A stretch of 48,265 bases of DNA, from assembly GCA_977017575.1 (NCBI GenBank), contig CDRNVI010000109.1, forward strand, positions 1 to 48,265, in the 5' to 3' direction. The notes below the pieces were generated by a model. That model saw only the letters and a program-made list of their open reading frames with translations. It had not been told where the DNA came from and ran no database searches. This stretch comes from Paramoeba atlantica. Lineage: Eukaryota > Protista > Discosea. This document shows positions 1 through 48,265 of this stretch, one piece after another; the first letter of the stretch is position 1, and each line of letters begins with the position of its first letter. The position numbers and the translations under genes are program-made.

Positions 1-2
1 TC

Positions 3-3071: not shown

Positions 3072-3127
3072 TATAATAAGCGAAGCAAGCGTAAACGAGA
3101 ATGAAGTAAGGCGCAAGATAAGGATGA

Positions 3128-4259: not shown

Positions 4260-4266
4260 TACTTAA

Positions 4267-5096: not shown

Positions 5097-5166
5097 CAGT
5101 TAACTCCAAGTTGTTTGCAATGTTATAAGGGGTTAGTAGCCTGTTAGTTTGTTAACGATTGATTAT

Positions 5167-8100: not shown

Positions 8101-8233
8101 GGTGGAGACTTCAATTTGTGGATATTGGCGCACAGTCATATTGCTAAATGACACTAAGCCAATTAGCACTAGAATTAAGCTTAACACGGTTGCAAACACC
8201 GGTCGGCGAATAAATGTATCAGTAAAACTGCAT
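5167..8233 (-). CDS. RND (HAE1/AcrB-like) efflux permease, many frameshifts
   Basis: Starts MQF(T)DTFIRRPVFATV; contains GLVVDDAIVVLENIHR, ALTLSPMMCA, KHGILIVEFAN and LRPILMTT. Confidence 0.92.
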
Positions 8234-8254
8234 CAGGTTATTTCACTTAACAAA

Positions 8255-9333: not shown

Positions 9334-9676
9334 TATATGTTCCCTTTTTGTCTTGCAGATGTTTAACATGGTAATGCTGGGCTGCACTTAATAGCCAGTT
9401 GATTGGCTAACTCATGACATCTGTAAGATAAACCATCCTGATATCAGTTGTCTCGATTTTACTGTATTTAATAGAATATGGCTAACACTTATGTTCACTT
9501 TTTAAAGCGTGGCTTTGTTTTGGATAAGGAATAAATAGATTGCCTAGAAAATTAGCGCCATAAATGGCTTATAAAAACATCAAAATCAAATAAATATAAT
9601 CATTACTTCAAGTAATAATTTGAGCCAGAGCGAATGTTAAGCTAAATGTTAATGTCAATTATATATTTGCTGCTAT

Positions 9677-12260: not shown

Positions 12261-12300
12261 TTCATGGTACGTTTCACTCAATTTTTTTTTGTGAAATGAG
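12255..12300. other. Bacterial-to-eukaryotic sequence junction
   Basis: The IS3 transposase stops abruptly (FKE*). Downstream there are no bacterial operon genes, only eukaryotic transposon families. Confidence 0.8.
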
Positions 12301-14337: not shown

Positions 14338-14761
14338 CATTTCCAAATCCAAATCATTCCGGATTGCTCCGGATGGTCGCTGGCAAGCCAGACCCTTCAC
14401 AGACAGATTTGGAAGTTCCGAGGCCGACGTCCTCTACCAGTTTCCGCTTGTCCAAGGCGGCACCAACGTGCTGTTGCCAACACGCTGCGTCGACGAACTG
14501 TACGTCAACACGGCTCACCCACGAGGTGTAAGCCGGGTAAGGGAGCTGGTTCCCTGAGGGGAGGGTCCGGGACGGTCCTCCGAGTACTGGGCCTAGTCGG
14601 TTATCAGCCCAGCCTCTTAGAGCGAGGCCGCCGGGAATATTGCGATGAGCGGGTTTGAACTCGCCGTCTGAGCACCATGTGCTTCAAACTTTGAATTCTT
14701 GCCACTCCGCCACCTCCGCCCTACTCCGCCACCTCCGCCCACTCCGCCACCTCCGCCCACA
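14338..14761 (-). mobile_element. tRNA-derived SINE-A, full length
   Basis: 12-bp TSD GAATTTTCCTTT (14326-14337 and 14762-14773); A and B boxes; 5' head reiterated three times. Confidence 0.85.
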
Positions 14762-18552: not shown

Positions 18553-18928
18553 TGCACCACTCCATGTGCGTTACATGCACAGGGGCGAAGATCTTCAAGA
18601 CCTGGACCTGTATTCCTATGCAGGCATTGTCAGCGTAAAGAAAAAAAGAGCTGAGCTAGCTCAAGAAGAGCCGGATCATGATTCAGATTTTGAATCAGAG
18701 CCAAATCGCGGACGTCGTGCTAATGGGAGATACGCCTTTGAGGACATTAAAGTCCTCCCGGAATTCGAGCCTGGAGATATTGTTGAGCAACAGGTGCGCT
18801 CTTTGCACACTGTGCCAGCTATACCAGGTTTTCGCATATTGAGTTCTTCAAAAGAACCTGGGACACGAGCTCGAAGCCAGCTTCGAGTAGCGAAACAGAT
18901 GGTGGCATTGTTTTCCCCATGGACGAAA
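18553..18928 (+). pseudogene. Internal fragment of the Helitron RepHel ORF
   Basis: Near-identical to 39947-40334 (RYMHRGEDLQDLDLYSYA...MVALFSPWTK). Confidence 0.9.
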
Positions 18929-19230
18929 AAAAAATCATCAAAATCATTCCGGATTGCTCCGGATGGTCACTGGCAAGCCAGACCCTTCACAGACAGATTT
19001 GGAAGTTCCGAGGCCGACGTCCTCTACCAGTTTCCGCTTTTCCAAGCCGGCAACAACGTGCTGTTGCCAACAAGCTGCGTCGACGAACTGTACGTCAACA
19101 CGGCTTACCCAAGAGGTGTAAGCCGGGTAAGGGAGCTGGTTCCCTGAGGGGGGGGTCCGGGACGGTCCTCCGAGTACTGGGCCTAGTCGGTTCTCAGCCC
19201 AGCCTTTTAGAGTGAGGCCGCCAGGAATAT
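18929..19230 (-). mobile_element. SINE-A, 5'-truncated
   Basis: Body and tail match 37300-37604. Confidence 0.85.
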
Positions 19231-22200
19231 CTCTGTACCTTGTTGTTGTTTTTTCGTTAAACTTTACAAAAACTTTATGGTTGTGCTAACGCGCTCCAAA
19301 CTTGCAATGCAGCACTCGACCAACGAATCCAATATCGACCCACAGAGCGACTGGAACGAAATACACTACCCTACACCAATTCTACCTCAAGTGTCGAAGA
19401 AATGGAAAGGAAAAGTAGGTAGTCTAAAGGGCAAAGGTCTAAACGAGATTATGGACAAAAGCAGCGACATTCACGACAACTCCACAATTTCAGACGAAAT
19501 GAACATCGAACCGCGAGAATGCATCACACGACAAGAATCACGACAAAGCAAACCACGGAAAATCAAAGTTATCATCGGAGACTCACGACCTTCGGATCAA
19601 ACAAGCTCAGATATGCAATCGAAGTCTCCCCAAATAACTGAAAATGCGCCGCAAAATGAAGACGACATGTCAGCGGACACCGATGGCCTAAGTACCTCAT
19701 CTGAAACAATGTCATCCGACGATCTGTGTATGAGTGAGCACACGAAGTTTGAAAGCGACAGACCAAGTTCAAGACATTGTATCAGAATGGGGCCGCGGTA
19801 CTCAATGCGAGATCCTTTGGAACTTCCGCTACGGAGAAGAAATTTTTTATTCTGTCGGCGAAGTAGTGTCCCGCGTCTCAAGGAAAGGTCAGGTTCGTAT
19901 AAAGATTGCGTACTCCCCTGCTGAAGGACAAACCGGACCCCAAGGAAACCTCTTTCTTCCACAGTCTGACAAAGCGCGAGTCTTTCAAATCTGTGCTACG
20001 AAGATAAATCGAATACCAAGCAAAGGAGTAAACACGCTAAATTTTCCGGAGAGCATGTCAGAGACGACGAAGGAATCCGACACGCACAGAGACATGGATC
20101 CACTTCCACCGCTAGCTCAAATAGAACCGTCCTTTGCTGTACATGTGGTTTCAATTTTCAGAGAGACAATTCGCGAATATCCTCATTTACAACTTCTGTC
20201 CGAAAAAGAAACCCTATGGCACAGGTTCCTAAATGCTCCGAGAGATGCTTTGACCACTGTGAGGAAAATGCTAATGCGAACACAAGCCACGACTCACGCG
20301 CCGAAAAGTAAAAGTAAATATGAATACAACGTCGACAAGCTCAGCCAAGAAGAACAAGAAGAGTTAGAAACTGACTGCCGAGCGATCCGCAATGCTTTAC
20401 GAACGGCAAAAGCAGGAAACCTAGGCAAAGCAACGCGTATTCTCGATAACGTCTACAAACAATCACCCCTGACTGTCGAAGAAAAAGTTTCTCTTCTAAA
20501 AAGTCTCCATCCTTCCGGGAAAACGCCTCAAATGCCGATGAGTGTTGACTTTCCGCGCATTGGAATTGTTGAACGAGACGAACTCCTCTTAGCGGCCAGC
20601 AAATTGGCAAAGGGTGCTTCCCCAGGACAGGTTTCAGCGAATCGATGTTGCGACTTCTCCCCGACGATGAAGAATGCAGCATTTGCTTATGCCACATGTT
20701 TCGCGACGTGATCAATGGCGACATTCCAAACTCGGTGCGTGATCGACTCACAAGATGCAGATTAGTAGCTTTGCCCAAACAAATAAATAAACTGCGCCCG
20801 ATCGCTATAGGAGAGACCATCCTTAAAGTGTGTGGCATCATTCTTTTGCAACGACATGAAGACGCGCTTAAAAAGCACTTTCAAACCTTCCAACGAGGCA
20901 TACTACAAAAGAATGCGTGTGAGCAAATTGTGCATGAACTGATAGAAGAATACGAGGCAGACCACAAGATCGTCACAGTCGATTACACTAACGCATTCAA
21001 CACACCAAACAGAATCGCCATTGCAGAAACTCTTCAAAAGCATGATGTTTTCAGACCATTTATGCGCCTCTTTTTCCTAGAGTACTCCGAGCCATCTGAT
21101 CTTCTTTTCTTTGCTGACAACACACTCTATTCAACAATCAAAAGCACACCTGGGGTACGACAAGGTTCAGCCCTCTCATCTCTCTACTTTTGTAGCTTAA
21201 TACATCCCATCCTAGCTGAAGTAGCCGATCTTTTTCCTGAAGTCACGATCCGAGCATATATGGACGACATCACGCTTTCATCTCGAAACACTTTATCCCT
21301 AGAAGCCGCTTTCCTCCATCTTCAAGAACTTTCTAAAGACTTATCACTTGATGTCAACTGCAATAAAACAGAGTGGTTTCAGAAAGGAGCAAAAAACTGT
21401 CCATTGGCATTGCAGAAAGCTGGTCTATCGTCACCGGAGAAATCTGTCAAGATCCTAGGCGCCTACATAGGGGAGAATGAGGACGTTAGTGAAAAGCTCG
21501 TACGACAGTCAGTAAAGCATGTATGTCTTTTTCGACGTTTGCAAATCATGGGCCCAAGCAATCTTTCGTTAGCAATGTTGCAACGATGCACGATTCCACG
21601 ACAGGATTACTTTTTGCGCGTCCACAAACCAGCAGCTACACTGAAAATTGCTGAATGCTTCGATGTTGAAATATCAAGAATTATCTCACACTGGTTTCTC
21701 GCCACAGGTGACTCACTCCGCCTCGCAACTCTACCGCAAAAAATGGGAGGTCTTGGTCTCACTCAGTCCACTTTAAAGCAACGGTACTTTTTTGAAGCAG
21801 CCAGACGATCTATTGATGAGCATAAAATATCCACTAAAGCTCCGGTAGGTCACAAGCTGTTGAGAAAGTTAGTGGCGTTACTTTGAATCCGATGAAAAGA
21901 AAAACTAAGGCCTCTAAAGCAATTCGCGAAGAGCAAACAAAAGTGCTGTCAGAAATCAAAGCAAACAAGCGATTAAGTGAAGTCATTAGCAGAACAAAGG
22001 ACTCGAATTCACACTTGGTCTCCACTAATGATTACATCAATCCCTATCTTTTCCGATATTCCACAATGATGCGATTGGGGATATCACTCCCGAAAGCCAT
22101 TGTCCGGGATGCGGGTCACAGCAAGAAGGAAACGGTCTTCTTCATCATGTTGCGGGCTGCGCACAATGTTCAGGTATGAACACCACGAAGAAACACACAC

Positions 22201-26708: not shown

Positions 26709-27319
26709 GTTAGCTCCCATGGCCTCCAGCCTCCGGAAAATGGTGTCATATTTTTCGAGTTGATGAACTAATTTCGAACTGACGGATTGATTCTCTCCAA
26801 CAAAGGCACCGAGAAATTTGGCGGCTTTAGCTTCTGTTGAAGTGCCTTAACACTCTAGACTACCAGGTATTGCGATGTCATTCTTGCCGGTGAACCAAAC
26901 GCATTTTTGGCATGACAGCTCTATTCTTTTCTCCTGAAGAAGTACCTTAAACCGCTGGAAAGCCGTGCTAATGAGCGCAGGATCTTTAGAAGCAAAATTT
27001 ACGTCATCGATGTATGCGTAGATATATAGTTCGGGAAATTCATGTGCCATCGTTTCCAGCAATGGCTGGAAAAACGTACAGAAGTATAACGTAGATAACG
27101 ATGAACTCTGTCGGACCCCTGCTGTGCTATTAACCATTCCATGGAGGTTGCCACTTGAACCGTAGAATATCAACTCCGAGCTCTCTGAATATTCGGTGTG
27201 AAACAGTCTTTGGAATGGTTTCATCTTGTGGAAGGCAAACATTGCTTTCGCAATGTCGCCGGGTGGGGACGTTAAAGGCATTCTTGACATCCAGAGAAAG
27301 AATTGCATGTCCGTCACAC
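26709..27319 (-). mobile_element. CRE-like RT fragment, continuation of 23500-24731 across the cassette insertion
   Basis: DVKNAFN, GVRQSSSLSTLYFC and AYIDD. Removing 24732-26708 rejoins ATGGGAGCTAAC|ATTTCACTA (MGAN|ISL). Confidence 0.8.
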
Positions 27320-27865
27320 AACTCTCCCTTTCCCCCTCTTTTCTTCTACTGGTGTAGTTCTCTGTGCCGCGCAGGTGTGCCATCCTAAAAAAGTGGTCCG
27401 AAGAACTGCCCGTCACCGCCCTCATAAACCACGGGCATTGCGTGGCATGCATGCTCGACGCCAATTGGAGAACCCTAGAGGTTCCGCTGAGAGGAGAAAC
27501 ACGACCGTGAGCACACTGAACGTGACGACACTAAAGCTTGAGGGGGAAGACGAGTTTTCCCTTCGAAGATGCACTCGTCTTTGAATTCTCTTTCATGATA
27601 GAAAAGGTGGCCTACATTATGTGCTTACAGGAAACTAGGTATAAATTTTCCAAGGATGTTCACGAGGATAGAATTATTTATAGGAAGGTCGAATATTTGG
27701 GGCATAGGTTTCATGTATACCTTCAGTCTGTCACAGGCGCGGATTCATACAACGGCATGGCTATCGTTAGACGAAGGATACTAGGAAATGTGTGGAAGGT
27801 GAGTGGGAATCATCTTGTTTCGACATCTTGGAGTTATAACTATGCTACGTCAAAGATATACGTCA
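27320..27865 (+). pseudogene. 5' fragment of a second RTE-like LINE (APE endonuclease N-terminus)
   Basis: TLNVTTLKLEGEDEFSLRRC and CLQETR are homologous to VRTLKLKGEDEFSLRKC...GLQETR at about 36500-36635. Confidence 0.75.
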
Positions 27866-29621
27866 AGTGATGTCGATCATCTTGGAATACGTGGGGAGAA
27901 ACACATCGCCTGGCCTGGTGAGCCCCCCTCCGGGACCTCGATTGCCAAGACTGTGCTCTCGTTGGGGTGCCAAAGAGGCATGCCCGCAGAAGGAGGAAAA
28001 ATGTTCAACCAGGGAATTGTGCCGGTTTATTATACCTTGTCCGTGTTTGCACACGAGTGCGTGATCCCCTTCAGGACCCAGAGGGAGTTTGCATTCGTCC
28101 GAGGGACATGGACGAGTTTCTCCGTATACATACACCCCCAACCAACATAGACACAAGGTTCGAAACTCCGCGGGTTTGAATGCATAGCCCAGGTCCTTCG
28201 ATGGGGTGACGAACGCCCAACTGCTAGCCCCTTTCCCTGATTGTGATACCCATCTGGTTCGCGTTCGTGTATCAGTGGAACTGTATGCTATGTTAAACTC
28301 CCTTTCCCCTATAGCGCGGATGATATCTTTCTGACGTGGGATGATACTTTCTTCCCATTCTGGCGGGTCAAGGTCAGCGTCTAGGTCAAGGTCAGCGCCC
28401 AACGGCGGGTCAGTATCTAAAAGAGGTTCGGTGTCCGATGGCTCGCGGGCTGTATCGACCTTTGTGGAAGAGTGAATGGATGGCTTTGGGGGAAAAGAGG
28501 GATGTGATCGGTCACGCTTTTGGGTGGTGGGGCAAAGGAAACAACCCGTTTCGGGATCTACGTGAGTGCCTCCGGCTTTTGCGTTCACGTCGTTGACGGC
28601 AGGTGAAAAACCTTCCGCGTCCAGTGGATTCCATCCGTCCTTGCTTGCGAGTACATTTCCGATGAACGCAGACCGAAACCTCCGCGTCTGAAGAGACTCG
28701 GAGGATCTTCAGGCGTTGGATCTGAGCGCGGGCAGGGGCGTTCAGTGGGCAAAGTATTTCCTCAGCTGTGCTCAACAGTGAATTGTCTAGATGTTCGCAA
28801 ACGCGTCGTATGCATTGTGGGGGTGTAGGGCGTAGACCAGTTGACAAAAGCCAGCACATTGTCGTACCAGTGCCATGTCGACCTGCGGGTCCTCAATTAA
28901 ACAGGAAGCAACTAACGTATCTTCTGCTGGTTCGATCGCATTGGTCATGAGGTGTTCGGCGCAGTGTTCGTGGGATCCGATAGGGCTTCCTAGGATGTCG
29001 AAATTTCCTTCTGTGTTTTGCTTGTCTTTTGGTATATCTGGGAAAAGAGATGTTTGGTGTGCAGATGAGGGTTGTGTGATCTCGCATTTCTTGCTATTGA
29101 GGTGTAGTCCCTGACCTGGTCCGAGGTGATCAAGTATGTCGAGAGCTTTTCCTACTTCTTCTTCTTTCCCTATAAAAACTCCACCATATAAATACCATAG
29201 GTTTAGAAGAAGTTCCGTGTACGACTGAATTTGTTTGGCAACCTCCAACATAACTAAGGAAAAGGGAAGAGGACCGAGGGGATCTCCCTGTTGTACCCCT
29301 TCCGCGGACGGTACGAAACGGTGCCCGTAAGTTAAGCTACTGGTTTCGACGTAGCTCCATTCAACCCATCTAGACAATTCCGGGAAGTGCTCTCTGGTGA
29401 GACTGATGCATGCGTCACGGCTAACGTTGTTAAATGCGTTGGGCAAATCAACTTTGCATAACTAAGTTTGCATACTATATCGGAATTTGTTGTGTTAGTG
29501 TCCATTGAAAGCCTACAAAGGTGAATGATACGTTCTGCCCCTGCTCGGGTGGCCACTCCATATTCTTGTGCTTCAAAGTATTTCCCTGCTTTCATTCGCA
29601 CACTACTGCATGCGGCCTTGG
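27863..29621 (-). mobile_element. CRE-like non-LTR retrotransposon (family 2), truncated at both ends
   Basis: NAFNNVSR, GVQQGDPLGPL, LWYL, ILGSPIG, CPSDEC...HALVC, RHNSL and RPGDVFLP; protein clearly homologous to 16537-17385. Confidence 0.8.
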
Positions 29622-30030
29622 AGAGGTGGAGCCTAGAGGTGGAGGTGGCGGGGTGGCAATAATTCAAAGTTTGAATTATTCGCACATGGTGCGAAGACGG
29701 CGAGTTCAAACCCGCTCATTGCAATATTCCCGGCGGCCTCACTCTAAGAGGCTGGGCTGAGAACCGACTAGGCCCAGTACTCGGAGGACCGTCCCGGACC
29801 CTTCCCTCAGGGAAACAGTTCCCTTACCCGGCGTACACCACTTGGGTGTGCCGTGTTGACGTACAGTTCGTCGACGCAGCGTGTTGGCAACAGCACGTTG
29901 GTGCCGCCTTGGACAAGCGTAAACTGGTAGAGGACGTCGGCCTCGGAACTTCCAAATCTGTCTGTGAAGGGTCTGGCTTGCCAGTGACCATCCGGAGCAA
30001 TCCGGAATGATTTGGTTTTTTTTGGATTGG
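29622..30030 (+). mobile_element. SINE-A, full length, diverged variant
   Basis: A and B boxes, full body, tail GGAATGATTTGGTTTTTTTTGGATTGG. Confidence 0.85.
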
Positions 30031-33387: not shown

Positions 33388-36300
33388 CCAATCCATCCAA
33401 TCCAAAAGACCGACATATGTCGGTTAGAATGTTAAATGTTTTCCCCCCGAACTTATACTCCCTCGCCTTCCAGTTCAGAGTTTAGTAGTGCCTACTATTT
33501 TACTTTCACACAATACTTTTCCTTTATCTTCCTGAACTCTTCCTCAGGGTATTCCGAACCTGCTGGTGGAAACACATCTTCCGCCCAACTCTTACTATGA
33601 AGGCGCCCTCTTTCCACCAGTTTTCGCAATCTTCCCGCACAGCGTGACTTTAGCCTCGGCGCCACGCTTGGGTGCTGGATTGGTTTTCGTCTTTCCCTTT
33701 TCCAAGGTTCTATGTTTTATCAGCTTTTCCAAGGATTTGTCGATTTGTGATGCGTTGGAATCATTACTTGTTTTTCTCTTTTTCTGCTCAGGCGGTCGAG
33801 GAACTTTTCGCTCTGCAATCAGTGCTAACCCATCTGCCTCGTCGTTCCATTTATTTCCTGAGTGACCCTTGACTTTGCACATATATATTGAGTACAAATC
33901 ATGTTTTAAGGACCGTAATTTTCCGTCTAACTGGGAGAACAAATCTCCATTTAAAACCCCCTTGTAACCAACGATTCGCCGCCGATATCGAAGATTGTGA
34001 AAGAAGTCCCATAGATAGTAAGAGTCTGTATGAAACAGACAAGCGCATGGTTTTGACGGCAGTTGGAGAAGGGCATGCTGAAAAGCTAAGATCTCTACTC
34101 GCTCAATAGTGTCTGATTCCAATGGTATGGATATCCGTGAGGGTTCGCATCGTGGTTTTAGAACTACGATACCTATGCCACTTCGAATCTCTTTCGTATT
34201 TTTCATCGGCAGAACAGAGCCATCGGTATAGATTTGTATGGCTTTATAGGCTGGAAAAGGCACATTTGATTCTTCAACGAACTGTAATTCTGAAGGACTT
34301 TTTTGTTTTTTAGCTTTGGCAAGAGCAGTTTTCCACTTTGCTGACCCAATTTTTTCGTATTCTATGAGCGGTTCAAGTTCACGTCGCAATTTTTCTGTCA
34401 GACGATACCAGTGTTCACGGTCTGACGCAAATACCAATGCCTCTTCCAGTGTAATGTTAAGATCCTTGAAGCAAGCCTCGCTTGGAGATAAATTGCGTGC
34501 ATTCGAGCGTTGTTTCCACTGTACGAGCTCTTGAAAATCACTGGAGTGCCTCAGCATGTGCCCGACGAGCTTGGCCCTCTGAACCTTGTGTATAGTAGAA
34601 AAGCGCTCAGTTTCAAGATACAGAGAAGCATTCGGGTAGCTCATTCCGTATTCATCTAATCTGTTGCATTGGCAAACTATTCTTCTCATGTTGTTAACTT
34701 CAACGTCAATTCTTCGGAGCATGGATTTTGAAATAGAAAGTGCACCGGTCCCAAAGTTTAGCACCGGATATACTATTGAATCGTAGAGGCGCAGCTTAGT
34801 CTCCGGGCTAAGTGGTGAAGACCAAATACCATTCATTCGAAAGAGAGATCCCCAAGCTAGTTTCAATCGATCTTTAACTGTAGATGTAAAATCATTTTCC
34901 TGCCGATGCCCTAAGTGTTTGTAAGACGTAAGTTTCGGAATCATCCCCGAGAATTTGCTGTTCAGGCTCTCGCTGCTCATTTGAGATTTACCAAAAGTTA
35001 ACCAGGCTGTCTTGTTTGCTCCGACGGCTAGTTTCAGATTAGCTTTGCGTGACTCTTCAGCTACATTGTCTATCATATTTGTCAAACCACTCTTCGTGTC
35101 ACTAAATAACGCTATATCGTCCGCATACTCAATGTCACTCAGGCGCTTTTCATGAAGACCCCGCTTTCTTGTACCCCCAGAGCTGAGAAGAACCCCGTCT
35201 GATTTTCCATCTAGCGCTTTATTGAGAATTCTATCTAACACCATAACGAACAGATAAGGCGCCAATACATCCTTGAAGTATTCCTGTAGTGATAGGGAAA
35301 GGTTTTGTGATTCCAATAGAAGTTCGTACAGTGCCTTTCAGCTCATCGTATATAGACATTATCATCTTAGAAAGACATGGACCTACTCGAAATGCATGCA
35401 AACTAGCTTTAATAGCAGCGAACGATACCGAAGGAAATGCTTTAGCAAAGTCTATAAAAGCTACAGAAAGGCCTTGTCCTCTGAATGCTTTGGTTTTTAT
35501 TTCGTTCATGATAATCTGAGCTCCAGAAGTCGCTCGGTTTGGTCGAAACCCATACTGGTTACCCCGAAGAGACTTTTCAATGTTGGGTCTAATGCGGGAG
35601 AGTATCATATGATTCATGAGCTTAACTACGCTATTTACTACGCATATAGGCCGCCAATTCTCAATGTTAGTGAGGACTCCTTTCTTTGGGATGGGTATTT
35701 GAAGAGTGTTGCGCCAGGCTTCCTCTGTGACCCCCGTTAATTATATTCAGGAGATGCGATCTCAGATCAGGGTGGACCGCTATAGCTTGAAGGGCTTCCA
35801 TTGGTATTCCGTCACTTCCCGGTGTTTTTCCTCTTCTGAAATGTTCTAAAGACGAGAGCTGATTCGTCTTCGTTTTGGGATCACTGACTCGCCATTTAAT
35901 TTGAATTCTGGCTATAACACAACAGTGAGTAGTAGGAATGGGTGCCTTGATCACTTTGTGTCGTTGAACTGCCGATGCAAATCTGCTACAAATAAATATG
36001 TGATCTAACTGCCTTAGAGCTTTGTTTGGTAATTCGCATGTCCATTTCCGACTACTTGGACAAAGACTGTGCGCAGACTTACAGTCTATAGAACAAGAAA
36101 GTCCTTTAAGACGGGCGGCCGCAATGGGATCTAGATCCTTATTTGTTATATGTGTCAAAGGTGCATTAAAGTCGCCCAGTACAATTAATGGGCGACGCGG
36201 GTTGCTTTCCCTTATTCTCAAGCAGCAACGTTCGAGTTCTCCTTAGAACTCCGTAACCTCTACGTCCTTAGAATCGCGTGTAGGAGAATATACGTTAATA

Positions 36301-36629
36301 ACTGTTGCGACTCCTTCCTCCATCTCAAATTCACCCGACATAATCCTTTCACTGATTTTAGATACCTTAGACAAGGGAAAAGTGCTGACGAATCCCATTC
36401 CATTGTATGCATCCTTTGCGCGCGCTGGAATGAGGTTCAAGTGAAACTCTGCGTTCCGATATTGTACTTTGCGGTGAAGGACATCCGACTTTTCAGAAGA
36501 TGGGAATCTGAATCGCGTTTCCTGCAGGCCCAGAATATTTATTCCCTTCAGGCCAATGAAGGCAAGTACTTCGCAAAGGTGTCCGCACTTTCGTAGGCTA
36601 AACTCGTCTTCACCTTTCAGCTTAAGAGT
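33388..36629 (-). mobile_element. RTE-like LINE: APE, RT and RNase H; 5'-truncated
   Basis: 12-bp TSD ACGCACTAAAAT (33376-33387 / 36630-36641). APE: GLQETR, NVYSPT, LGDFNA, LDHIF. RT: QYGFRP, FIDFAKAF, GILQG.VLAPYLF, YADD. RNase H: YTDGS, ERVE, TDSYY, KVKGHSGNKWNDEAD. Confidence 0.9.
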
Positions 36630-36720
36630 ACGCACTAAAATACTTCTATGAGACTTCCTACATTGATCGTCTTCCTGGAAGACGAATCGTCTATACGAAG
36701 TCAATGGAGAACTAGTCAAC

Positions 36721-39700
36721 TATACGAAGTCAATGGAGATGGCTCACGTCGAACACGTTTTGACATTGAGCGCAATCCAAAAGACGCACTAAAATACTTC
36801 TATGAGACTTCCTACATTGATCGTCTTCCTTTGGAAGATTTTTCAGTCAGTACGGAAGCTCAAGAAAAGTGCATGAAAAGGTACAAAAAGAGAATGAACG
36901 ACGACCAACGTATCACAAGTTGTGATTCTTGTAAAGTTATTCTTCTCGAAAGTGACCTTCCGAATCCCGAAGCGCAACTTTGTGCAAGAGATCAAAGAAT
37001 AATGGACAAAAAAGGGAGAATTCCCCGCGGTCCAGTAGAACAACCTTCTACAAATCACCTTCCAGTACCCACGCTGGTAGAAGAGATCCTTCTTCAAAAG
37101 GTGTTTTTACACTGCACAATCATCAGTGTGCATAGGAAAGGTGGCGCATATGCCGCATCCTTGACGCCAGACTCCTCCTCCTGAGGCCAGGAGGAATCAC
37201 CCTCCCTTTCAAGAGGCGGAGGTGGCGGAGTGGCAAGAATTCAAAGTTTGAAGCACATGGTGCTCAGACGGCGAGTTCAAACCCGCTCATCGCAATATTC
37301 CCGGCGGCCTCACTCTAAGAGGCTGGGCTGATAACCGACTAGGCCCAGTACTCGGAGGACCGTCCCGGACCCTCCCCTCAGGGAAACAGCTCCCTTACCC
37401 GGCTTACACCTCTTGGGTAAGCCGTGTTGACGTACAGTTCGTCGACGCAGCGTGTTGGCAACAGCACGTTGGTGCCGCCTTGGACAAGCGGAAACTGGTA
37501 GAGGACGTCGGCCTCGGAACTTCCAAATCTGTCTGTGAAGGGTCTGGCTTGCCAGTGACCATCCGGAGCAATCCGGAATGATTTGGATTTTTTTTTTTTT
37601 TTTTTGAGGCCAGACACGAAGTTCACTGGACACTGGCTACAGCACGCGAAAACCTTGAGCTCTTGCAACTCGAAAGAGTTCCTGATCTCGAGGGCGCGAT
37701 TAAGAACATCCAAATTGTTTGGATAGCCAACGAACGGAGAACGAAACGTAGTCAAAGACTATGTTCTGCACAGCTGAGTGGCATATTCGGCGTGAAATCA
37801 GAGACCCTGAACACCTGGGTAAACTTCCTCTGTGAGCATAACCACGTGTATGCTCAACTGAAAGAGGAAGGAAAGATCAACGTTGTTACCGAGCAACATT
37901 GTAGAGACGTTGTCTCACATCTTTGGGATAGATCTGTTTCCCAGGAGGGTGAAAACGCCATCAACAGTATGGTCACCCAAGCAGTGGCTTCCGATACGTT
38001 ACATCGCGATCCTCGCGGTGAGATCACACGATCTTTTGTAACTGATCACAGCCTTGTAAGCAATGCGCCGTCGGGTGCGCAAATTACGCATGCCGTGGCG
38101 ATGCAACTGAAACAAAAAGAAGGTTTACTCAAGGAGTATACCGACATGGAAAACATCTTGCTCGGAGCATTTCCGACGCTGATGCAAAAGTACCCTTTTA
38201 ATGGTTCAACGTTTGAACTATATGAAATCAAGGAAATTCTAGAGCAATCGGATTCCCGATTTGCAAAGAATGCTGGATTCATATTTTACTGCTACGATGT
38301 GCTTCGGCGCCGTGCAGTCTCATCAGCAGTAGTGCAAAATCTGAAGTATAACAAAGATATGCACAGAAGCCTCATGAATTTTTGCAATGCTGATGCTTTC
38401 TATCACATTGTGCAACAGGCTATAAGGAACCCAAACAGTTCCGAGGCGAAACTTCTGGAAACAAAGTTTCTGTTCCATTTGTGCAAGTATGCGGAAAAAC
38501 GATACCCTTTTCGCCGGCAAAGCGAAAGGCATCACAAGGCCAGATCTACGCCTTATACAGGCGATACGGGCTGCCAAGTTACTGGATCACAGTGAGTCCA
38601 AACATGAACGATAACGTTCTAGCTCTAAGAATCATCACAAATGATGAGAGCGAAAAAATGCAGGAAATGCGGGCCAACCTTCTAAAGCGATCTGAGCTTG
38701 TGCAAGGGAATCCTGTCAGATCCACTAGCATTTTCGAACGGCAAATCCGTACTCTTCTTACCGAATTGTACGGAATGTCGAATGTAGATGAGGTAAAGAA
38801 GGAACGTGACGTTCTTGAAGGCCTCTTTGGTCGCCCTCGAGCATTTTTTGGTGTTGTAGAATGCCAGAAAAGAGGTGCGCTACACTTTCATAGTGTGCTA
38901 TGGCCGAATCTTAGTCCACATTACGTCTCCGAATTAATTCACATTGTGAAGGAGCACGATGGTCTCGCGAAGTCTTTGGGTACGACGATGCGCGCTGATC
39001 TGCCCGAGTGGGCGCAAAGGATCAGTAAGGAGCTTTACGGCCCTGCAACGCTCGACTACTCAAAGATGTATCGCGGAGGTCTGCATATCATTCCTGATGG
39101 AAAGGATGATTATTTCAGGGAACATGTGGCCAAATGTGCTGTTGATGTTCAGCAGCACGTTGGTCACAGACCCATGTGTTTCAAAATGAAAGGAAACATT
39201 AGCAAGAACAAATGCCGATATGGCATTCCATCCGTACTTCATGAAAATGAAACGGAAGTTAGAGAGGTTGAGGTTCAGATGGATGAATCCGGACAACCGG
39301 AATTCCGGCACAAGGCTCCAACACGGCCGATTAAAAATGATACCATTTGGCCAGTACTTGATGAAAGGTCTCTGATTGTGCTTCTGTGCAATAACCAGGA
39401 CCCGACACAACACACTAAATGGGGATCCATCACCGTTCAGTACAATAAAATACTCACTGCTTGCGTAAGATGCAATACATGTGTAGTTTTCATTGGGAGC
39501 GAAGGTCCCGGCATAAAAATTATGCAGTATCACATAAAATATATGAGCAAGGACATTGGTCCACCTGTGTACATTGTACCAGCACTTCGCGCAGCCAATG
39601 ACCACCTTCAAATGGGTCTGAATTCAGAGCACAGAGTGCAAACTGACATTCCGATGGCACGCTTAGTTCTACAGAAATTGTCGAACATGACACATCGAAA

Positions 39701-42333
39701 GATAGAAGTTTCAATCGAAATGGCAACTGCCTTTTGTCTCGGCCAATCCTCCGAGTATATGAGCCATAACTTCACATGGATCAATATGAACCGTGTAATG
39801 AAGTTCCTGGCAAATATCTCAAGTGAGTCAGATCACATAGATCTCGAAATCAGTGACGATGATTCGTCACAAGACTCTGATATGGAGTTCGACGACGGTA
39901 TCTTAGAGGCTCCTCTAATGATCACCGAACATGATTGTGCAGTTCTTGCACCACTCCATGTGCGTTACATGCACAGGGGCGAAGATCTTCAAGACCTTGA
40001 CCTGTATTCCTATGCAAGCATTGTCAGCGTAAAGAAGAAAAGAGCTGAACTAGCTCAAGAAGAGCCCGATCATGATTCAGATTTTGAGTCAGGGACAAAT
40101 CGAAGACGTCGTCGCGGACGTCGTGCTAATGGGGGATACGCCTTTGAGGACATTGAAGGCCTCCCGGAATTTGAGCCTGGAGATATTGTTGAGCAACAGG
40201 TGCGCTCTTTGCACACTGTGCCAGCTATACCAGGTTTTCCCATATTGAGTTCTTCAAAAGAACCTGGGGCACGAGCTCGAAGCCATCTTCGAGTAGCGAA
40301 ACACATGGTGGCATTGTTTTCCCCATGGACGAAAGGCTCACCGAGACATGAAATGACCCTAGAAGGGTTTGAAAAGCTTCTCAATGAAGCGAAAATAAAT
40401 ACGCCTGGAAAGTATGACATAATGTGCAATTTTCTTCGGCTTTTACATGCTTCGAAGAATACAGAGAACGCGGCAGATTTGTATCGACGCAAAGATGCTT
40501 GCACTCTGGGAGAAGCAAGATTAGAACGCAACATTGCGTACGAAAATGAGCTTGAAGTGCGAGAGGTTGAACCTCATCTTCAAGATGCTCTTGAAGCACA
40601 GCAGAACACTGCAGTGGTTAATGAAGAGCGATTGGTTCAGCAGAATGCATACTGCGAACTACAAACACGAGCTTTAACGGCCGCGTTAGGAGGTTCTACT
40701 GATAACTCCTCTGAAGAAAATGTTGATCTTGCATCGACAATGACAAGGACGAGGTCCAATATTTCAGTCATAAATGCGCGAGAGCGCTATGCTGAAATGA
40801 TCCAAAACGAACGATTTGCAACTTCGGCTCAATCTGAGCCAAGTGCACCAGTGGACAGAGCTCATTTTAATGAGGATCGTCCACTGGCTCGCAGTAATCA
40901 ATACGAAGAGATTACGTTCGATCGCAGCTACGTATTGCGCGAAGACAACAGTTCCATTGAACTGAATCAAGCACAGAGACAGTGCGTAAATCAAATTGAA
41001 GATTTACTAAACGGGAAACTAGACCCCGAGCGGAAATGTATGTTTCTGCTCGGTGGCCCCGGAACCGGGAAAAGTCTAGTTTCCCGTTTCATAATGCAAG
41101 AACTGGGAAGCCAATGTATTGCAATGGCGCCCACTGGGATCGCCGCATCAGTACTGCACTGTTGCACAATACACGCTTCCCTCTGCATACCGATAGGGGC
41201 TACTGCAAGAAATTTGAAACATCTTTCAAGCAGTAGCCTTCTACCATACCAACAAAGGTATGAGAAATGTCGATTAATCATAGTCGACGAAGTGTCAATG
41301 ATCAGCAAGTGTTTCCTTGCCTGTATCAACGCTAGGCTGCAGCAAATCAAAGGAAATGAGCAGCTTCCCTATGGAGGCATCAACATGCTCTTTGTTGGAG
41401 ATTTTTATCAGCTGAGACCAGTACAAGGAGCGTCTCTTACCATAGAAGATAGCTCTCCTGGTAATAATCCCATTTTTGAGAATATTTTTCAAGTCTCGTA
41501 TGTGTTTGAACTCAAACAACAAATGAGAGCACGACAAGACTGTATTTTCAGATATCTTGCGTCTTCTTCGAAAAGCTTCCAATGAGGGGTTGAAGAAGTT
41601 CATCCAATTGGTAAAACCTCTTACCTCTGAGGACCAAGAAAAGTTCCGCAATGCAATTGTCATTGTTGGAACAAATATTGAACGGCACAAGGTTATTGTC
41701 GCAATGGCAAGAAATTTTGCCAGACGTCACAATTGCCCATTGTTCGCATGTACGGGCGATAACGTCCAAGGTAAACTCATTGACACACACCCTGAAGCAT
41801 TTTCTGTATTTGTAAAAGGAGCACCCGGTGTAATCACCGAGAATATTGCTCCTTATACAATGCAAATTGCGAATGGGACAGTGATTGAAATGAGAGACCT
41901 TGTGTCAGACGATTTGTCATACGACACTATTGATGGTGTTCGTTATCTAAGAAAAGCCCCTTCTTTTATGCAATGCATTGAGAAGGGGTCAGGTGTAGAA
42001 TTTTACGCCAAAAAGGCGCAGCACCATGATAAGGCTTCCCAAGGAAACTTTCAAGTGGAATTGGGATTTGCCTATACGTATCACAAAGTACAAGGTATCA
42101 CCGTGAAGAACGGTGTTATTCTTGACTTGAATGATAAGGCGTGGTCCAAGAGACCGGAATTCGCCAAGCTCACAGTAGCAATATCCAGGGCACAATGCCT
42201 CGATGATATTCGAGTGCTCCCTGGCATGGGCACAGATCGCCCAGGAACACACCTGACTTCAGGTTACCATAGGCCTAAATTTCCGGCCATGGAAAAAGCA
42301 AATCGGCTTACCGATTTGACTTATCAATTCTAA
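36721..42333 (+). CDS. Helitron Rep/helicase (frameshifted, SINE-interrupted)
   Basis: LPVPTLVEEILL (DUF6570-like by recall); FGVVECQKRGALHFH (HUH); YHIKYMSK (catalytic Tyr motif); LGGPGTGKS, IIVDEVSM, GDFYQL, AYTYHKVQG and VAISR (PIF1). Confidence 0.92.
37191..37604 (+). mobile_element. SINE-A, full length, inserted in the Helitron ORF
   Basis: 9-bp TSD TGAGGCCAG (37182-37190 / 37605-37613); A box TGGCGGAGTGG 37223-37233; B box GAGTTCAAACC 37273-37283; T-rich tail. Confidence 0.9.
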
Positions 42334-42540
42334 GAAATTAGATTGAAACGATATTCTTAGGAAGACCTCTCTAGGGGGGAAGCAAGCTTGATACCGGTCA
42401 CAATCCCGGCGTCTTCAGCTTCGGCAGAAGAAGTGCGAGTGACCCCAACGCCCACGCGCCCTCTACCAAAAAAAATGTCTCCATCATAGCTGCAGAATTA
42501 CGCTCCGTCAAAATTGCTTTCAATTTTTTTTATCGAAATT

Positions 42541-42742
42541 TCAGAAGCTTGTTTGCTTCAAAAGCACCCACCGCGGCAGCGGGCCTGTACCGTCTCGAAG
42601 GGCGCCCCGGGCGGGCCCTTCAAAAAAAGATATCAGAAGCTTGTTTCCTTCAAAATTACATGTCACGAGGTAAAGCACCCACCGCGGCAGCGGGTCTGCA
42701 CCCTCTCGAAGGGCCCTCCGGGCAGGCCCTTCAAAAAGAAGA
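42541..42742 (+). repeat. Tandem duplication of about 90-110 bp, each copy with a GC-rich GAAGGGC...GCCCTTC hairpin
   Basis: AAAGCACCCACCGCGGCAGCGGG occurs twice. Confidence 0.8.
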
Positions 42743-42824
42743 CTTCTACGTTCATGTATTGCTTTTTAAGTTGAATGTTTCTAGACTCAGCTTGATTTTT
42801 TTGAAAACTATCTTTGAATTGACT

Positions 42825-43166
42825 ATGGCCTCGGCGGAGAATCAATCAACCAATGGCAACGACATTTCCGACAAGGAAAGAGATACAAATCGCAAAAGAG
42901 ATGATTACTTAGAATCTCTACACGTTTTGCGCTCTGCGCGCGAAGAGCGTGACGAGCGCTCAATCACAATAGAACACCTTCCCTCCTCTACGGCTAAAGA
43001 AGACCTTACCAAGCATTACGCTTCTTATGGCGAAATCGATTGCATAACAATCGTATCAAAAAAGGGACTGGCGCACGTGTGTTTTAGCACTACGGAAGAA
43101 GAAAAGCGTGCATCGAGCGTTTACTTCAAAGGGAAAAAGAAGAGAAACAGATACTTAAATTTCTGA
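42825..43166 (+). CDS. RRM-domain ORF, copy 2, inside the Helitron
   Basis: Near-identical to 12566-12940; lies between the RepHel stop and the terminal modules. Confidence 0.7.
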   Translation: MASAENQSTNGNDISDKERDTNRKRDDYLESLHVLRSAREERDERSITIEHLPSSTAKEDLTKHYASYGEIDCITIVSKKGLAHVCFSTTEEEKRASSVYFKGKKKRNRYLNF

Positions 43167-44501
43167 ATAAGTGTGTAAGAAGACGTTTGGAAGTGAAAGT
43201 TGGTTTAAAATTTTGAAGTCATGATTCGAAGGTTGGAGAAGGAAAGAAAACACTTTTCTTTCGAGAAATTTTCGGCTTAAATTCGTCCACAGGACCGTTT
43301 TTTTACGATTCATCGCATCAAAGTTTTTCTGTGGTTTTACTTTGTGTCTCGGAAACCCTCTGTAAGTATTTGTCACTTCGCATTTTCTAAACTCAAATAA
43401 ATACAATTGAAACTAAATTTGTTAAAAAAATGTTTACATTTACATAGCAGATCTACATTTGCAGTCATCACTTCTTCTATTTTTAGCCTGATCATTCAAC
43501 AAATATGATTTTGATGACTCAATTAGTGCATACCCAACGTACTGTCAGAAAAGCGTTCCGACATGGCATTAACTTCACCCCTGGCGTAAACCAAATGAAT
43601 CAAAACGAAGAAGTAAACCCACGAGGTAAATCCCCCCCCCCTTCAAAAGCCGGGGTGAATTCAAGTGCCTTTCAAAAAAAGAGGTCTCCACCCTGCTTCG
43701 TTCAAAATCGTGCGAACCGAAGGAAAACAAATGTGAGCGGAAATATGGAAAAACAACCCTATTTTTGCCCAACTATCGGCTCTTTTTGGACCAAATCCAG
43801 AATTATCCCTCTGGTTTCTTTTACTCTCCTGTCAAATTTTTCTTTTCTAAGCTCTTCGTTAAACGCGGTAAAGGAAAAAAATATAAAAGGGGGATCCGGT
43901 GGTCCAAAATTGAAAACAAAAATTGAAAAAAATGGGGGGTCTATGGGGGGGGGCATACCCTACCAGGGGTTGACCCCCCCTCGTATCCGCAAGACGGGTC
44001 CGTCAAGTTCCGATTTTTTCGGAAAAAACAATTTGAAAAAATTTTCAACTTGACGAAAAAATTGGTAAAAAGAATATTTTTCCAAAGTTGTTTCGCCTAT
44101 TGTATTTTTATAGTTCGGGACCTATTCTAGCTTTTTACGTCATTGGTTTTGCGAGGTGTAGCTTCTTGAAGCCGTGGTACGACTCCCAAAATGTCCCATT
44201 TTTGATCAAAAAATGCGAAAAAGTAATTTTTGGACACCAAGAGGTCTTTTTGAATCGTGTGGTTGGAGTCGCATTCTCGACTTTAGTGCTCTATATACAA
44301 AAATCACCCCATTTTTACCAAAAAATCGGCAATTTTTGGCTCAAATCCTTCCGTTTTCTTCCCCGTCCCTGGCCAATTTTCTTTTTTAGGCTCTTCGTCA
44401 AACGCGGAGGGAGTTTTCAACGCGAAGCGCGCAGCATGAGTGACTTCTAGGTTGAAAACAACCACCGCGTTTAACGAAGAGCCTAAAAAAGAAAATTATT
44501 T

Positions 44502-45499
44502 ATTGCGGTGGTTGTATAACTACCGCTCTACCCTCGATTGCGGTGGCTGTAAAACTACCGCTCTACACTCGATTATTGAAAAAAAAGTGAACAAAAACAG
44601 TGAAAATATAAAGGGGAACACAGTAATATAATAGAAGAAAAAAATATAAAAGGGGGCTCCGGTGGAGTAAAACTGAAAAAAAAAATTGAAAAAAATGGTG
44701 GGTCCATGGGGGAGGTCCATGGGGCGGGTCCAGGGTGGGGTCCAGGGGGGGATCCAGGGGGGGGTCCAGGGGGGGTTCCAGGGGGGGGACCAGGGGGTCA
44801 TGGTCGAGCAATTTTTTTCGAAAAAATTAGATTTCGAAAAAATACCGCAGAAAGGGTAGCCGGGGTCTTGGCGCGCATTTTCCACCCCCCTACCCGGGGG
44901 TGACCCCCCCGCGTATCCGCAGGACCGGTCCGCCAATTTCGGATTTTTTCGGAAAAAAAATTTTGAAAAAAATTTCAACATGGCTAAAAAAATGGTAAAA
45001 AACATATTTTTCCAAAATCGTTTCCCCTATTGTATTGTGATAGTTTGGGACCTACACTAGCATTCTCCGAAGTTGTTTTCGCAAGGTATCCCTTCTTCGA
45101 ACTGTGGTGCGCCCCTCAAAATGACCCATTTTTGACTAAAAAAGGTGAAAAAGTATTTTTCGGACCTAAAGGGGGATTTTTGTGTCGAAAGAATGGTGCG
45201 GTTGGAGTCGCATTCTCTACCCAATACGTTAAGTAGGCTTTCATTCATGCCTACGAGTGATTTCCCACGCGTAAATGTCGGATTTAGTGCTCTGAGAGCA
45301 AAAGTACGCGAAAATCACCCCATTTTTACCAAAATTCGGCTATTTTTGGTTATAATCTTTCCGTTTTCCAGGCTAAATTTTCTTTTTTAGGCTCTTCGGT
45401 AAACGCGGCGGTAGCTTTCAACGCGAAGCGCGCAGCATGAGTGACTTCTAAGTTGAAAACAACCACCGCGTTTAACGAAGAGCCTAAAAAAGAAAATAT
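44502..45499 (+). mobile_element. Complete palindromic cassette abutting the Helitron 3' end
   Basis: Two 35-bp 5' units, all internal modules, terminal palindrome. Confidence 0.88.
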
Positions 45500-46177
45500 T
45501 ATTAGCTCCAATGGCCTCCAGCCTCCGGAAAATGGTGCCATATTTTTCGAGTTGTTGAACTAATTTGGAACTTACGGATTGATTCTCTCCAACAAAGGCA
45601 CCGAGAAATTTGGCGGCTTTTGCTTCTGTTGAAATGCCTTGACACTCTAGAGTATCAAAAAAAAAGAGTATCAGGCATTTCTAGAGTATCAGGCATTGCG
45701 ATGTTATTCTTGCCGGTGAACCAAACGCATTTTTGGCATGACAGCTCTATTCTTTTCTCCTGAAGAAGTACCTTAAACCGATGGAAAGCCGTGCTAATGA
45801 GCGCAGGGTCTTTAGAAGCAAAATTTACGTCATCGATGTATGCATAGATATATAGTTCGGGAAATTCTTGTGCCATCATTTCCCGCAATGGCTGGAAAAA
45901 CATACAGAAGTATAACGTAGATAACGATGAACTCTGTCGGACCCCTAATGTGCTATTAACCATACAGTCTTTGGAATGGTTTCATCGTGTGGAAGGCAAA
46001 CATTGCTTTCGCAATGTCGTCGCGGGTGGGGGCCTTCAAGGCATTCTTGACATCCAGAGAAAGAATTGCGTGTCCGTCATTGTACAAAGCGTGTAGTTTA
46101 TGGGCCACTTGTTCACATCCTCCGTTCATCATTACGCCGTGTTGCATTGGCTTGAAGCGCACGTAGTCTAACGGTTA

Positions 46178-46249
46178 GCGCACGTAGTCTAACGGTTAGG
46201 ATGCTTGCCTTCCAAGCACGCGGAACGGGTTCGACTCCCGGCGTGCGCG
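46178..46249 (+). tRNA. Eukaryotic-type tRNA-Gly(TCC), probably a retrocopy; its first 21 nt are also duplicated at 46157-46177
   Basis: Acceptor stem GCGCACG/CGTGCGC, anticodon loop CTTCCAA, T-loop GGTTCGACTCC, no CCA, followed by TTTT. Confidence 0.85.
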
Positions 46250-46257
46250 TTTTGCAA

Positions 46258-46920
46258 GGCGGAGGTGGCCGAGTGGCAAGAATTCAAAGTTTGAAGCACA
46301 TGATGCTCAGACGGCGAGTTCAAACCCGCTCATCGCAATATTCCTGGCGGCCTCACTCTAAGAGGCTGGGCTGAGAACCGACTAGGCCCAGTACTCGGAG
46401 GACCGTCCCGGACCCTCCCCTCAGGGAACTAGCACCCTTACCCGGCTTACAAAATCCAAAAATCCAAATCATTCCGGATTGCTCCGGATGGTCAATGGCA
46501 AGCCAGACCCTTCACAGACAGATTTGGAAGTTCCGAGGCCGACAGGGCTGGTTCCCTGAGGGGAGGGTCCGGGACGGTCCTCCGAGTACTGGGCCTAGTC
46601 GGTTCTCAGCCCAGCCTCTTAGAGCGAGGCCGCCGGGAATATTGCGATGAGCGGGTTTGAACTCGCCGTCTGAGCACCATGTGCTTGAAACTTTGAATTC
46701 TTGCCACTCCGCCACCTCCGCCCGGCTTACGCCTCTTGGGTGTGCCGTGTTGACGTACAGTTCGTCGACGCATCGTGTTGGCAACAGCACGTTGGTGCCG
46801 CCTTGGGCAAGCGGAAACTGGTAGAGGACGTCGGCCTCGGAACTTCCAAATCTGTCTGTGAAGGGTCTGGCTTGCCAGTGACCATCCGGAGCAATCCGGA
46901 ATGATTTTGATTTTTTTTTT
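46258..46920 (+). mobile_element. SINE-A, full length, containing a nested inverted SINE-A
   Basis: Head 46258-46450 and tail 46731-46920. Confidence 0.85.
46451..46720 (-). mobile_element. SINE-A, internally deleted, nested in another SINE-A
   Basis: 10-bp TSD CCCGGCTTAC (46441-46450 / 46721-46730). Confidence 0.85.
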
Positions 46921-47142
46921 GACTCGAAGAGACTTTATAGAGTTCCTTCGTCGCTTTGTAGCAGAACAAGGCCAGCAAGTTTTAGGAGGATTTCTCCTAT
47001 CGCACTAGGCCGTACGCGACCTTCGGCTTTGGGGAGGGCAACAAGTCGAGCGCGTCGCAGGCGTGTCATGAGCTGTTTGGACAGACACCCATTGATTAAA
47101 TCGAGAAGCATGTGGCTTAAGTATATGCAACAGACTTCCATC

Positions 47143-47820
47143 CGTAATACTTCTTGACAATTCTTCCCCTTTTGATGCGGTGCGGGCGTAGTTGGTAGAC
47201 GGTGGGCCTTACAACCTGTAGGTTGTTTGTTCGATTCCCGCTATCGACAAAACTCGCAACCTGGTGGCCTCACTATAAAGGGAAAGCGATCAGAAGTGCC
47301 TTCAAGGCCCACACCCAACCCCGCTCCCCTGGAGGACCGACCCGGAACCGCAGAGCTGAGCCAGGCTCCAGCGCAGCCGCTAAATTGCGAGCTGCTTACG
47401 CAAAGAAGGCTTGAGACACAGCCTACACGATGCAACGGGTTGGGCGCCAGTCCTGGTAGCTACGGTTGGGTAGCCGTTCTCGGGCCGCAAGGCGTCGAGT
47501 GCCGTCTGGGAAGGGGGTAGCAAGACGATGAAGGTCGGTGGGCCTGAGACTCTACCCTAACGGTTGGCGCTGCAGAGCCCTCCGTGTTCTTCTTCTTCTT
47601 CTTCTTTCTTCTTCTTCTTCTTCTTCTTCTTCTTCTTCTTCTTCTTCTTCTTCTTCTTCTTCTTCTTCTTCTCTTCTTCTTCTTCTTCTTCTTCTTCTTC
47701 TTCTTCTTCTTCTTCTTCTTCTTCTTCTTCTTCTTCTTCTTTCTTCTTCTTCTTCTTCTTCTTCTTCTTCTTCTTCTTCTTCTTCTTCTTCTTCTTCTTC
47801 TTCTTCTTCTTCTTCTTCTT

Positions 47821-47850
<30 letters not shown>
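47143..47850 (+). mobile_element. tRNA-derived SINE-B with (TTC)n tail
   Basis: A-box-like GGCGTAGTTGG 47185-47195; B box GTTCGATTCC 47229-47238; degenerate tRNA-Val(TAC)-like head; cleanly interrupts the CRE RT frame. Confidence 0.75.
47587..47850. repeat. (TTC)n microsatellite, about 264 bp
   Basis: Direct reading; a few single-base phase slips. Confidence 0.98.
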
Positions 47851-47851
<1 letters not shown>

Positions 47852-48265
47852 TCTAACAGTAGACGAATGATGCCGTCGGTCAGTCCTGTGGGGCCTTGTG
47901 CTGCCCCCTTTGCCAAACGACGTCCTACGAAACGGAGCTCCTAGGTTGTAATGCATGCGATTTGGGGTGCATCATGAGGCAACTGAAATGTAATCGGGCC
48001 ATCCGGATGCAATGCTTTAAGCTGGGAGAAAATTTCTTCGTCGGATATAGTGTTTGGCTTGATTTTCCTGTCTAGTACTTTAGTAGCTTTTTAGACTGCA
48101 CCTTCCAGCACGAATCGAATAGCTTTTTTAATTGCTCGTTTGTCGATTTCTTGTTAAAGCGATGTGGTTGATTCAAGGTTTTCTTTCAGTGGACGTCGCC
48201 GTCTGCGTTTGGCCTCGGCTATCTTGACGGTTGTGAGTGAGTACTTAACGGCTGATAAGGCGCGA

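Follow-up and report, generated by a model that had tools for sequence, protein, structure and literature searches.

A short core with a predicted closing helix is shared by two SINE families in the genome of Paramoeba atlantica

Introduction

Short interspersed elements (SINEs) are placed in one superfamily when families from a variety of taxa have a central sequence in common (PMC4824008). These central domains measure 45-150 bp and occur in combination with varying tRNA-derived heads and with varying tails derived from long interspersed elements (LINEs) (PMC4824008, PMC4758252), template switching being the accepted route by which SINE modules are exchanged (PMC4824008). [quoted passage not shown] No function is known for any central domain (PMC4824008, PMC4758252); their role has been open since the CORE domain, and they have so far been used for classification. 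Here, we analyse a stretch of 48,265 nt (hereafter the window; contig CDRNVI010000109.1, positions 1 to 48,265 of the forward strand) from the protist Paramoeba atlantica (Discosea; assembly GCA_977017575.1, 45.7 Mb in 248 contigs), which carries copies of two SINE families, SINE-A and SINE-B. These differ in head, body and tail and have in common a short core whose two conserved blocks are predicted to pair with each other.

The closest case described within one genome is that of HaSE1 and HaSE2 of Helicoverpa armigera, two families with a common head and a common 62-bp central domain (PMC3272025). Among protists, the RIME, NARTc and SIDER elements are presented as deletion derivatives of ingi/L1Tc-type LINEs with a common 79-bp 5' signature (PMC2323293), and a 2025 survey of trypanosomatids and Bodo saltans lists only the CRE, INGI, TATE and VIPER clades (PMC12278014).

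Results

SINE-A and SINE-B are genuine, recently active and young retroposon families, as follows from their copy number, low divergence, target-site duplications (TSDs), variable tails and a nested insertion. A first look across the genome gave at least 495 candidate copies of SINE-A (best matches 96-99% identical) and at least 208 of SINE-B (best matches 94-99% identical), counts that are inflated by tandem arrays in which SINE-A and SINE-B recur at fixed spacing (~1995 bp, 6485 bp, 1-3.5 kb); long tandem arrays holding SINE copies lie at C21:764-781 kb, C12:137-164 kb, C40:962-998 kb and C87:19-53 kb. The consensus sequences are 376 nt long for SINE-A (from 46 copies) and 410 nt for SINE-B (from 34 copies), with a median divergence from consensus of 1.6% and 2.2%, respectively. 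Neither consensus has a TTTT run in its body, and GC content is 58-62%. TSDs were found at 9 of the 14 SINE-A copies and 10 of the 13 SINE-B copies examined, two of the ten SINE-B matches being artefacts of the (TTC)n repeat; most are 9-14 bp long and a few 6-8 bp, and in other genomic copies the range is 9-12 bp for SINE-A and 9-14 bp for SINE-B. The tails are of variable length; in SINE-A they combine T runs with TTTGGA units, and in SINE-B they consist of (TTC)n. In one SINE-A copy of the window (46257..46920, plus strand), a second SINE-A that is inverted and carries an internal deletion splits the sequence at 46451-46722 and is flanked by a 10-bp duplication, CCCGGCTTAC.

The two copies from which the analysis starts both lie on the plus strand. 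The full-length SINE-A copy spans 37215..37605 (self match 100%, boundaries taken from the consensus) and ends in a T run (37588-37605). An earlier sequence-only reading of the window had let it begin at 37191, a start that we move to ~37215 since the alignment of other copies starts no earlier than query position 24-28. The SINE-B copy, from head through end of body, occupies 47177..47586 (by the consensus; query position 13 is where the alignment of other copies begins) and is followed by a (TTC)n tail of 88 units (47587..47850). The SINE-A head (37215..37294) reads as class II-like with a long variable arm (sequence reading, ARAGORN at 80%), and the SINE-B head (47177..47249) has a degenerate Val-type anticodon region. 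An A box and a B box can be read in both, and to this extent the description of the elements as tRNA-headed holds. However, ARAGORN finds cloverleaf-like heads only at a threshold of 80%, at which spurious calls also occur, and the Rfam tRNA model gives no match to either head at expectation values (E) up to 10; the heads thus appear tRNA-like only in a degenerate form.

To delimit the similarity between the families, local alignments of the consensus sequences were scored against dinucleotide shuffles (n=1000). The core (SINE-A consensus 85-158, SINE-B consensus 83-173) scores 23.25 against 10.1 +/- 2.0 for shuffled sequences (z 6.66), a score reached by 0 of the 1000 shuffles. By the same test there is no significant likeness between SINE-A and SINE-B in the heads (z 1.1) or in the region after the core (z 0.9), and the claim that head, body and tail differ around a common core is thereby borne out, the tails being of the T/TTTGGA and (TTC)n type, respectively. 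A long gapped alignment of the bodies looked suggestive of wider homology, yet we do not count it as evidence because only the core passes the shuffle test.

The core contains two conserved blocks, at 37300-37318 and 37354-37369 in SINE-A and at 47260-47278 and 47331-47346 in SINE-B, exactly where the sequence-only reading had located them. Consensus against consensus, 16 of the 19 positions of block 1 (CCTGGCGG in SINE-B) agree, as do 15 of the 16 in block 2 and two additional bases, with perfect runs of 12 and 9 nt between the families. In both, the blocks stand at a constant place, 15-22 nt past the B box. The enclosed spacer differs between the families, as had been noticed: apart from one 7-mer, AGGCCCA, found at colinear positions in the two cores, the interior has a different sequence in each family, and that of SINE-B is longer by 17 nt. 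Chance would give 0.04 matches to the block 1 pattern and 0.29 to the block 2 pattern in the window; each in fact has seven, and alignment assigns these to six SINE-A copies or fragments and one SINE-B. A further short block, GAACCAG-C-TCC, is found 10-20 nt beyond the core in both families within small hairpins; that of SINE-A (37380..37395, plus strand) has the ACCAG-type motif in its loop and aligns with 47353-47368 of SINE-B. The stems of these hairpins are out of register between the families and the block is not significant alone, so that it represents a possible third shared block.

The two blocks were predicted to form a helix that closes the core. In SINE-A its 5' strand would be formed by the first part of block 1 (37300..37311, plus strand), followed by a conserved 7-nt bulge, ACTCTAA (37312..37318; ACTACAA in the SINE-B consensus), which is unpaired in the minimum free energy (MFE) and RNAalifold structures. 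Next come the 5' strand of an inner stack, GAG (37319..37321), and an apical hairpin (37322..37350, from the MFE structure) that is variable and not conserved in SINE-B; the 3' side (37351..37369) joins the CTC partner of the inner stack (37351-37353) to block 2, the 3' strand of the closing helix, with a bulged A and a bulged T. The corresponding parts of SINE-B are block 1 at 47260..47271, the inner stack strand AGG at 47279..47281 with its partner CCT at 47328-47330, and the 3' side with block 2 at 47328..47346, all on the plus strand. The duplex energy of block 1 with block 2 is -18.7 kcal/mol in SINE-A and -17.2 kcal/mol in SINE-B. The outer helix has 11 pairs, every one a standard pair in both consensus sequences, and the differences between SINE-A and SINE-B within the blocks fall on the bulged base or turn C-G into U-G. 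The proposal that SINE-B keeps the helix through U-G wobbles stands for this change; a second U-G pair comes from the T at 47265, a C-to-T change in block 1 that is private to the window SINE-B copy and the segmental duplicate of that copy on contig C20.

The MFE structure of SINE-A holds the helix in 81-nt, 146-nt and full-length contexts. Full-length SINE-A RNA is predicted to fold as a chain of strong hairpins, two of them with GCAA loops, at an energy below that of shuffled sequences (z -3.75), the value for SINE-B being z -0.4. All three GCAA tetraloop hairpins that had been reported are indeed there, at 37452-37467, 37563-37578 and 47482-47493. The mean pair probability of the helix is 0.61-0.66 in 5' partial transcripts of the SINE-A consensus and 0.24 at full length, and 0.83-0.92 and 0.42, respectively, for the SINE-B consensus.

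From 28 distinct copies of the two families, RNAalifold predicts the outer helix together with the 3-bp inner stack just past the conserved bulge. In this set, the stack is GAG/CTC in all SINE-A copies and AGG/CCT in all SINE-B copies, two of its pairs (columns 31-86 and 32-85) being changed on both sides between the families. Standard pairs amount to 97% on the predicted structure, versus at most 61% when the 3' partners are slid along. When the interiors were shuffled, a 3-bp stack in a register common to both families and with at least two compensatory pairs arose in 2.5% of cases over 44 registers, and in 0.06% at the observed register. Each compensatory pair counts as a single event, two in all, because there are only two independent lineages.

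We found no third family with the core. A search of the genome for the two blocks with a spacer of 34-53 nt gave 198 matches, and all among the matches listed are SINE-A or SINE-B copies; with spacers outside 34-53 nt there were 0 matches. Three patterns that excluded the flanks of SINE-A and SINE-B gave 2, 7 and 2 matches, which are mutated or truncated copies of the two families plus one unrelated stretch on contig C15. A profile of the core run with nhmmer over ~400 kb of fetched DNA rich in transposable elements (TEs) recovered fragments of SINE-A and SINE-B only. Outside this genome, a metagenome scan returned 7 pattern matches, GC-rich, bacterial and, on inspection, without a tRNA-like head, which we attribute to chance; 11 matches in a scan of prokaryote genomes, bacterial by record title alone, were likewise judged to be due to chance. 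A full-text literature search for the block strings brought up unrelated papers only. The suggestion that the core might define a new superfamily is thus not upheld: the core belongs to two families of one genome, the sharing is seen in this genome only, and its breadth as a superfamily is unproven. One piece in the tandem array on contig C12, 84% identical to SINE-B, was considered as a third family and set aside, being a single old truncated copy.

The core also has no relevant match in Rfam. Searches of Rfam, at gathering thresholds and at E up to 10 on whole elements and on cores of 115-131 nt, gave neither a ribozyme nor a 5S rRNA match, and apart from one noise-level match no other Rfam family matches the core; the self-cleavage at which the sequence-only reading had hinted finds no counterpart there. 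The lone match to a family of the signal recognition particle (SRP) is that of the archaeal SRP model to the minus strand of the SINE-B core, at E 5.1; its 8 bits, where the gathering score is 96.5, place it at noise level. By eye, parts of the SINE-A core recall helix IV-V of 5S rRNA. We rejected a 5S origin by alignment to the genome's own 5S gene (L089:1501-1619), which aligns with the cores no better than shuffles do (z 0.9 for SINE-A, 1.3 for SINE-B). The genes for 5S rRNA, of which there are at least 47 with identical sequence, do not form one array but occur one by one on contigs C137-C182. A search with a spliced-leader pattern gave no match. A likeness of parts of the SINE-A core to the Alu domain of 7SL RNA is likewise one seen by eye only, and such an origin is unlikely, with no Rfam SRP match to the SINE-A core at E up to 10. 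A second tRNA-like unit within the core was dismissed as well: ARAGORN at low threshold makes a reverse-strand call in SINE-A and none in SINE-B, which is no better than its spurious calls.

The window holds three more SINE-A copies, at 14345..14720 (minus strand), 18926..19230 (minus strand, 5' truncated with the core kept) and 29635..30023 (plus strand). The part from 46000 to 48265 is 99% identical to C20:578-582 kb, including the private change in block 1 of SINE-B, and represents a recent segmental duplication. The split SINE-A copy has a tRNA-Gly(TCC) gene (46178-46249) 7 nt upstream, and a tandem duplication of 21 bp spans 46156-46199. Elsewhere in the genome, an old 5'-truncated A-like copy (L053:515-935, L050:420-860), copied on contigs C65 and C11 in the course of segmental duplication, has a T/GGA tail followed by a 42-nt module and then (TTC)n. 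The module matches the 3' end of SINE-B at 88% identity, and no TSD is visible; the copy may be a template-switch chimera or a nested truncated SINE-B insertion.

The window also holds a LINE with endonuclease, reverse transcriptase (RT) and RNase H domains (33595-36719, minus strand), separated from the 5' side of the full-length SINE-A by a few hundred bases. Further RT fragments are found at 19734-21886 (plus strand) and 26847-29446 (minus strand), and an open reading frame (ORF) of 1034 aa for a Helitron-type Rep/PIF1 helicase at 38481-42333 (plus strand). The first ~12 kb (1-12300) look bacterial, with a tRNA-Ser(GGA) gene with encoded CCA (2982-3071, minus strand) and an HlyD-type membrane-fusion ORF (8255-9214, minus strand), and are joined to eukaryotic TE-rich DNA. 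The arrangement stems either from chimeric assembly or from integration of symbiont DNA.

Discussion

On balance, we favour the view that the core is a lineage-specific SINE central domain of two independently amplified young families, and the structure models likewise incline us to regard its helix as conserved and irregular. A number of results weigh against this. The complementarity of the blocks is unremarkable alone because both are G+C-rich, their duplex energy being equalled by 325 of 5000 shuffles of block 2 in SINE-A and 278 of 5000 in SINE-B (~6%). The pairing proposed by the sequence-only reading is predicted in both families by MFE, RNAalifold and partial transcripts, and is marginal as far as complementarity goes. 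In the window SINE-B copy, which however bears the private C-to-T change in block 1, the helix appears only in an isolated 98-mer and is gone from the 146-nt and full-length MFE structures, and this copy folds no better than shuffled sequences (z -0.4 to -0.6). Block 1 of SINE-A can also pair locally with GAGGC after the bulge, which gives an alternative fold. Covariation is present in the two compensatory pairs of the inner stack, but two lineages make a statistic of the R-scape type impossible, and the variation within families represents neutral decay and is uninformative, the shuffle control for the outer helix alone being flat. Finally, no LINE with either SINE tail was found in the window or in the fetched genomic loci.

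The shuffles that match the blocks, the restriction to two lineages, the loss of the helix from the full-length structure of the window SINE-B and a GC content that favours spurious stems would all suit a neutral relic, in which a common ancestral SINE or one recombination left two undecayed remnants, the helix and the swapped triplets being a coincidence in GC-rich sequence. We nevertheless hold this to be unlikely. Conservation is strikingly uneven, the two perfect runs lying beside an unalignable interior of different length; all differences within the blocks spare the pairing; and the chance of the compensatory stack (2.5%), taken jointly with the ~6% for the blocks, comes to ~0.15% if the two are independent. 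Capture of a host small RNA (7SL, 5S or another product of RNA polymerase III, Pol III) or of the 5' region of a partner LINE would have a precedent, LINE-derived middle bodies being documented (PMC5786205). It is quite improbable here, given the failure of the genome's own 5S gene to align beyond shuffles, the absence of any Rfam match above the archaeal SRP noise, and searches in which the blocks and the nhmmer profile led back to SINE-A and SINE-B copies or fragments, the one stretch on contig C15 excepted.

A site acting at the level of DNA, recognised by a transcription factor or chromatin factor that permits or enhances the Pol III transcription of source copies, would make the complementarity incidental. 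It would accord with the conservation of the primary sequence of the blocks, and not of their pairing alone, and with their constant distance from the B box; against it, a covarying inner stack would not be expected, and type 2 Pol III promoters work without a downstream element. We regard this explanation as very improbable. That the core is a self-cleaving ribozyme, or another catalytic RNA that processes the SINE transcript, is hardly credible, even if it is a structured region adjoining the head: no hammerhead, hepatitis delta virus-like, twister, pistol, hatchet or other match appeared in the searches with the 115-131-nt cores at E up to 10, head and body stay joined in full-length copies, and the interior, where a catalytic core would be expected, is not conserved between SINE-A and SINE-B.

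Under the reading of the core as a central domain, SINE-A and SINE-B would have amplified independently in one ~46-Mb protist genome, presumably with Pol III transcription driven by the A and B boxes in the tRNA-like heads. The same module of ~75-110 nt would have come to lie directly behind the unrelated heads of both families, either by descent from a common ancestral SINE or by transfer between lineages through template switching, and heads, distal bodies and LINE-type tails would have been exchanged around it. The parts of the module that would have survived are the pairing blocks (12 nt and 16 nt), the 7-nt bulge (ACU-NN-AA) and the 3-bp inner stack, the latter changed on both strands (GAG/CUC in SINE-A, AGG/CCU in SINE-B). 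Because the interior has diverged beyond recognition while blocks, bulge and stack survive, what has been conserved is most likely a closing helix of irregular shape within the SINE transcript, on which a variable apical hairpin is displayed. Such a helix would form in vivo and be needed in cis for the life cycle of the SINE RNA, candidate roles being the independent folding of the tRNA-like head, transcript stability, or the binding of a host or LINE protein; the core itself would not be catalytic.

A more ambitious version, in which the closing helix and the 7-nt bulge make up a functional domain of structured RNA that retroposition requires and that binds a factor from the host or from a LINE, and which would be the first SINE superfamily of its protist group with more members in related genomes, strikes us as doubtful. 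If pairing is indeed what is retained, this would be the first SINE central domain whose pairing, rather than sequence, is conserved. Pared to its pairing blocks, bulge and covarying stack, the core offers a compact and testable hypothesis of selection on an RNA helix. With two families in one genome, its value is that of a lead, and not of an established superfamily.

The core adds a new case to a class already known, that of SINE central domains. As with CORE, V/Vhc, Deu, Ceph, Meta, Nin-DC, Inv/alpha, beta, Pln, MESC and Snail, a domain is common to families with different heads and tails, and as in MetaSINEs it directly follows the head. The catalogued domains are a continuous stretch of 40-66 bp and occur in animal or plant hosts of many taxa, whereas SINE-A and SINE-B have two short complementary blocks and represent two families of one protist genome. 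We know of no sequence likeness between their core and any catalogued domain. The kinetoplastid RIME, NARTc and SIDER are, like SINE-A and SINE-B, short non-autonomous retroposons, but they are LINE derivatives and not tRNA-headed Pol III SINEs. The nearest parallel is with HaSE1 and HaSE2, which also have, within one genome, a domain directly after the tRNA-related region and different 3' parts. In their case, however, the heads are common as well and 94-97% identical, an identity that indicates a recent split. The heads of SINE-A and SINE-B are unrelated and the interior of their core has diverged, which points to the sharing being older and the stem having been retained selectively.

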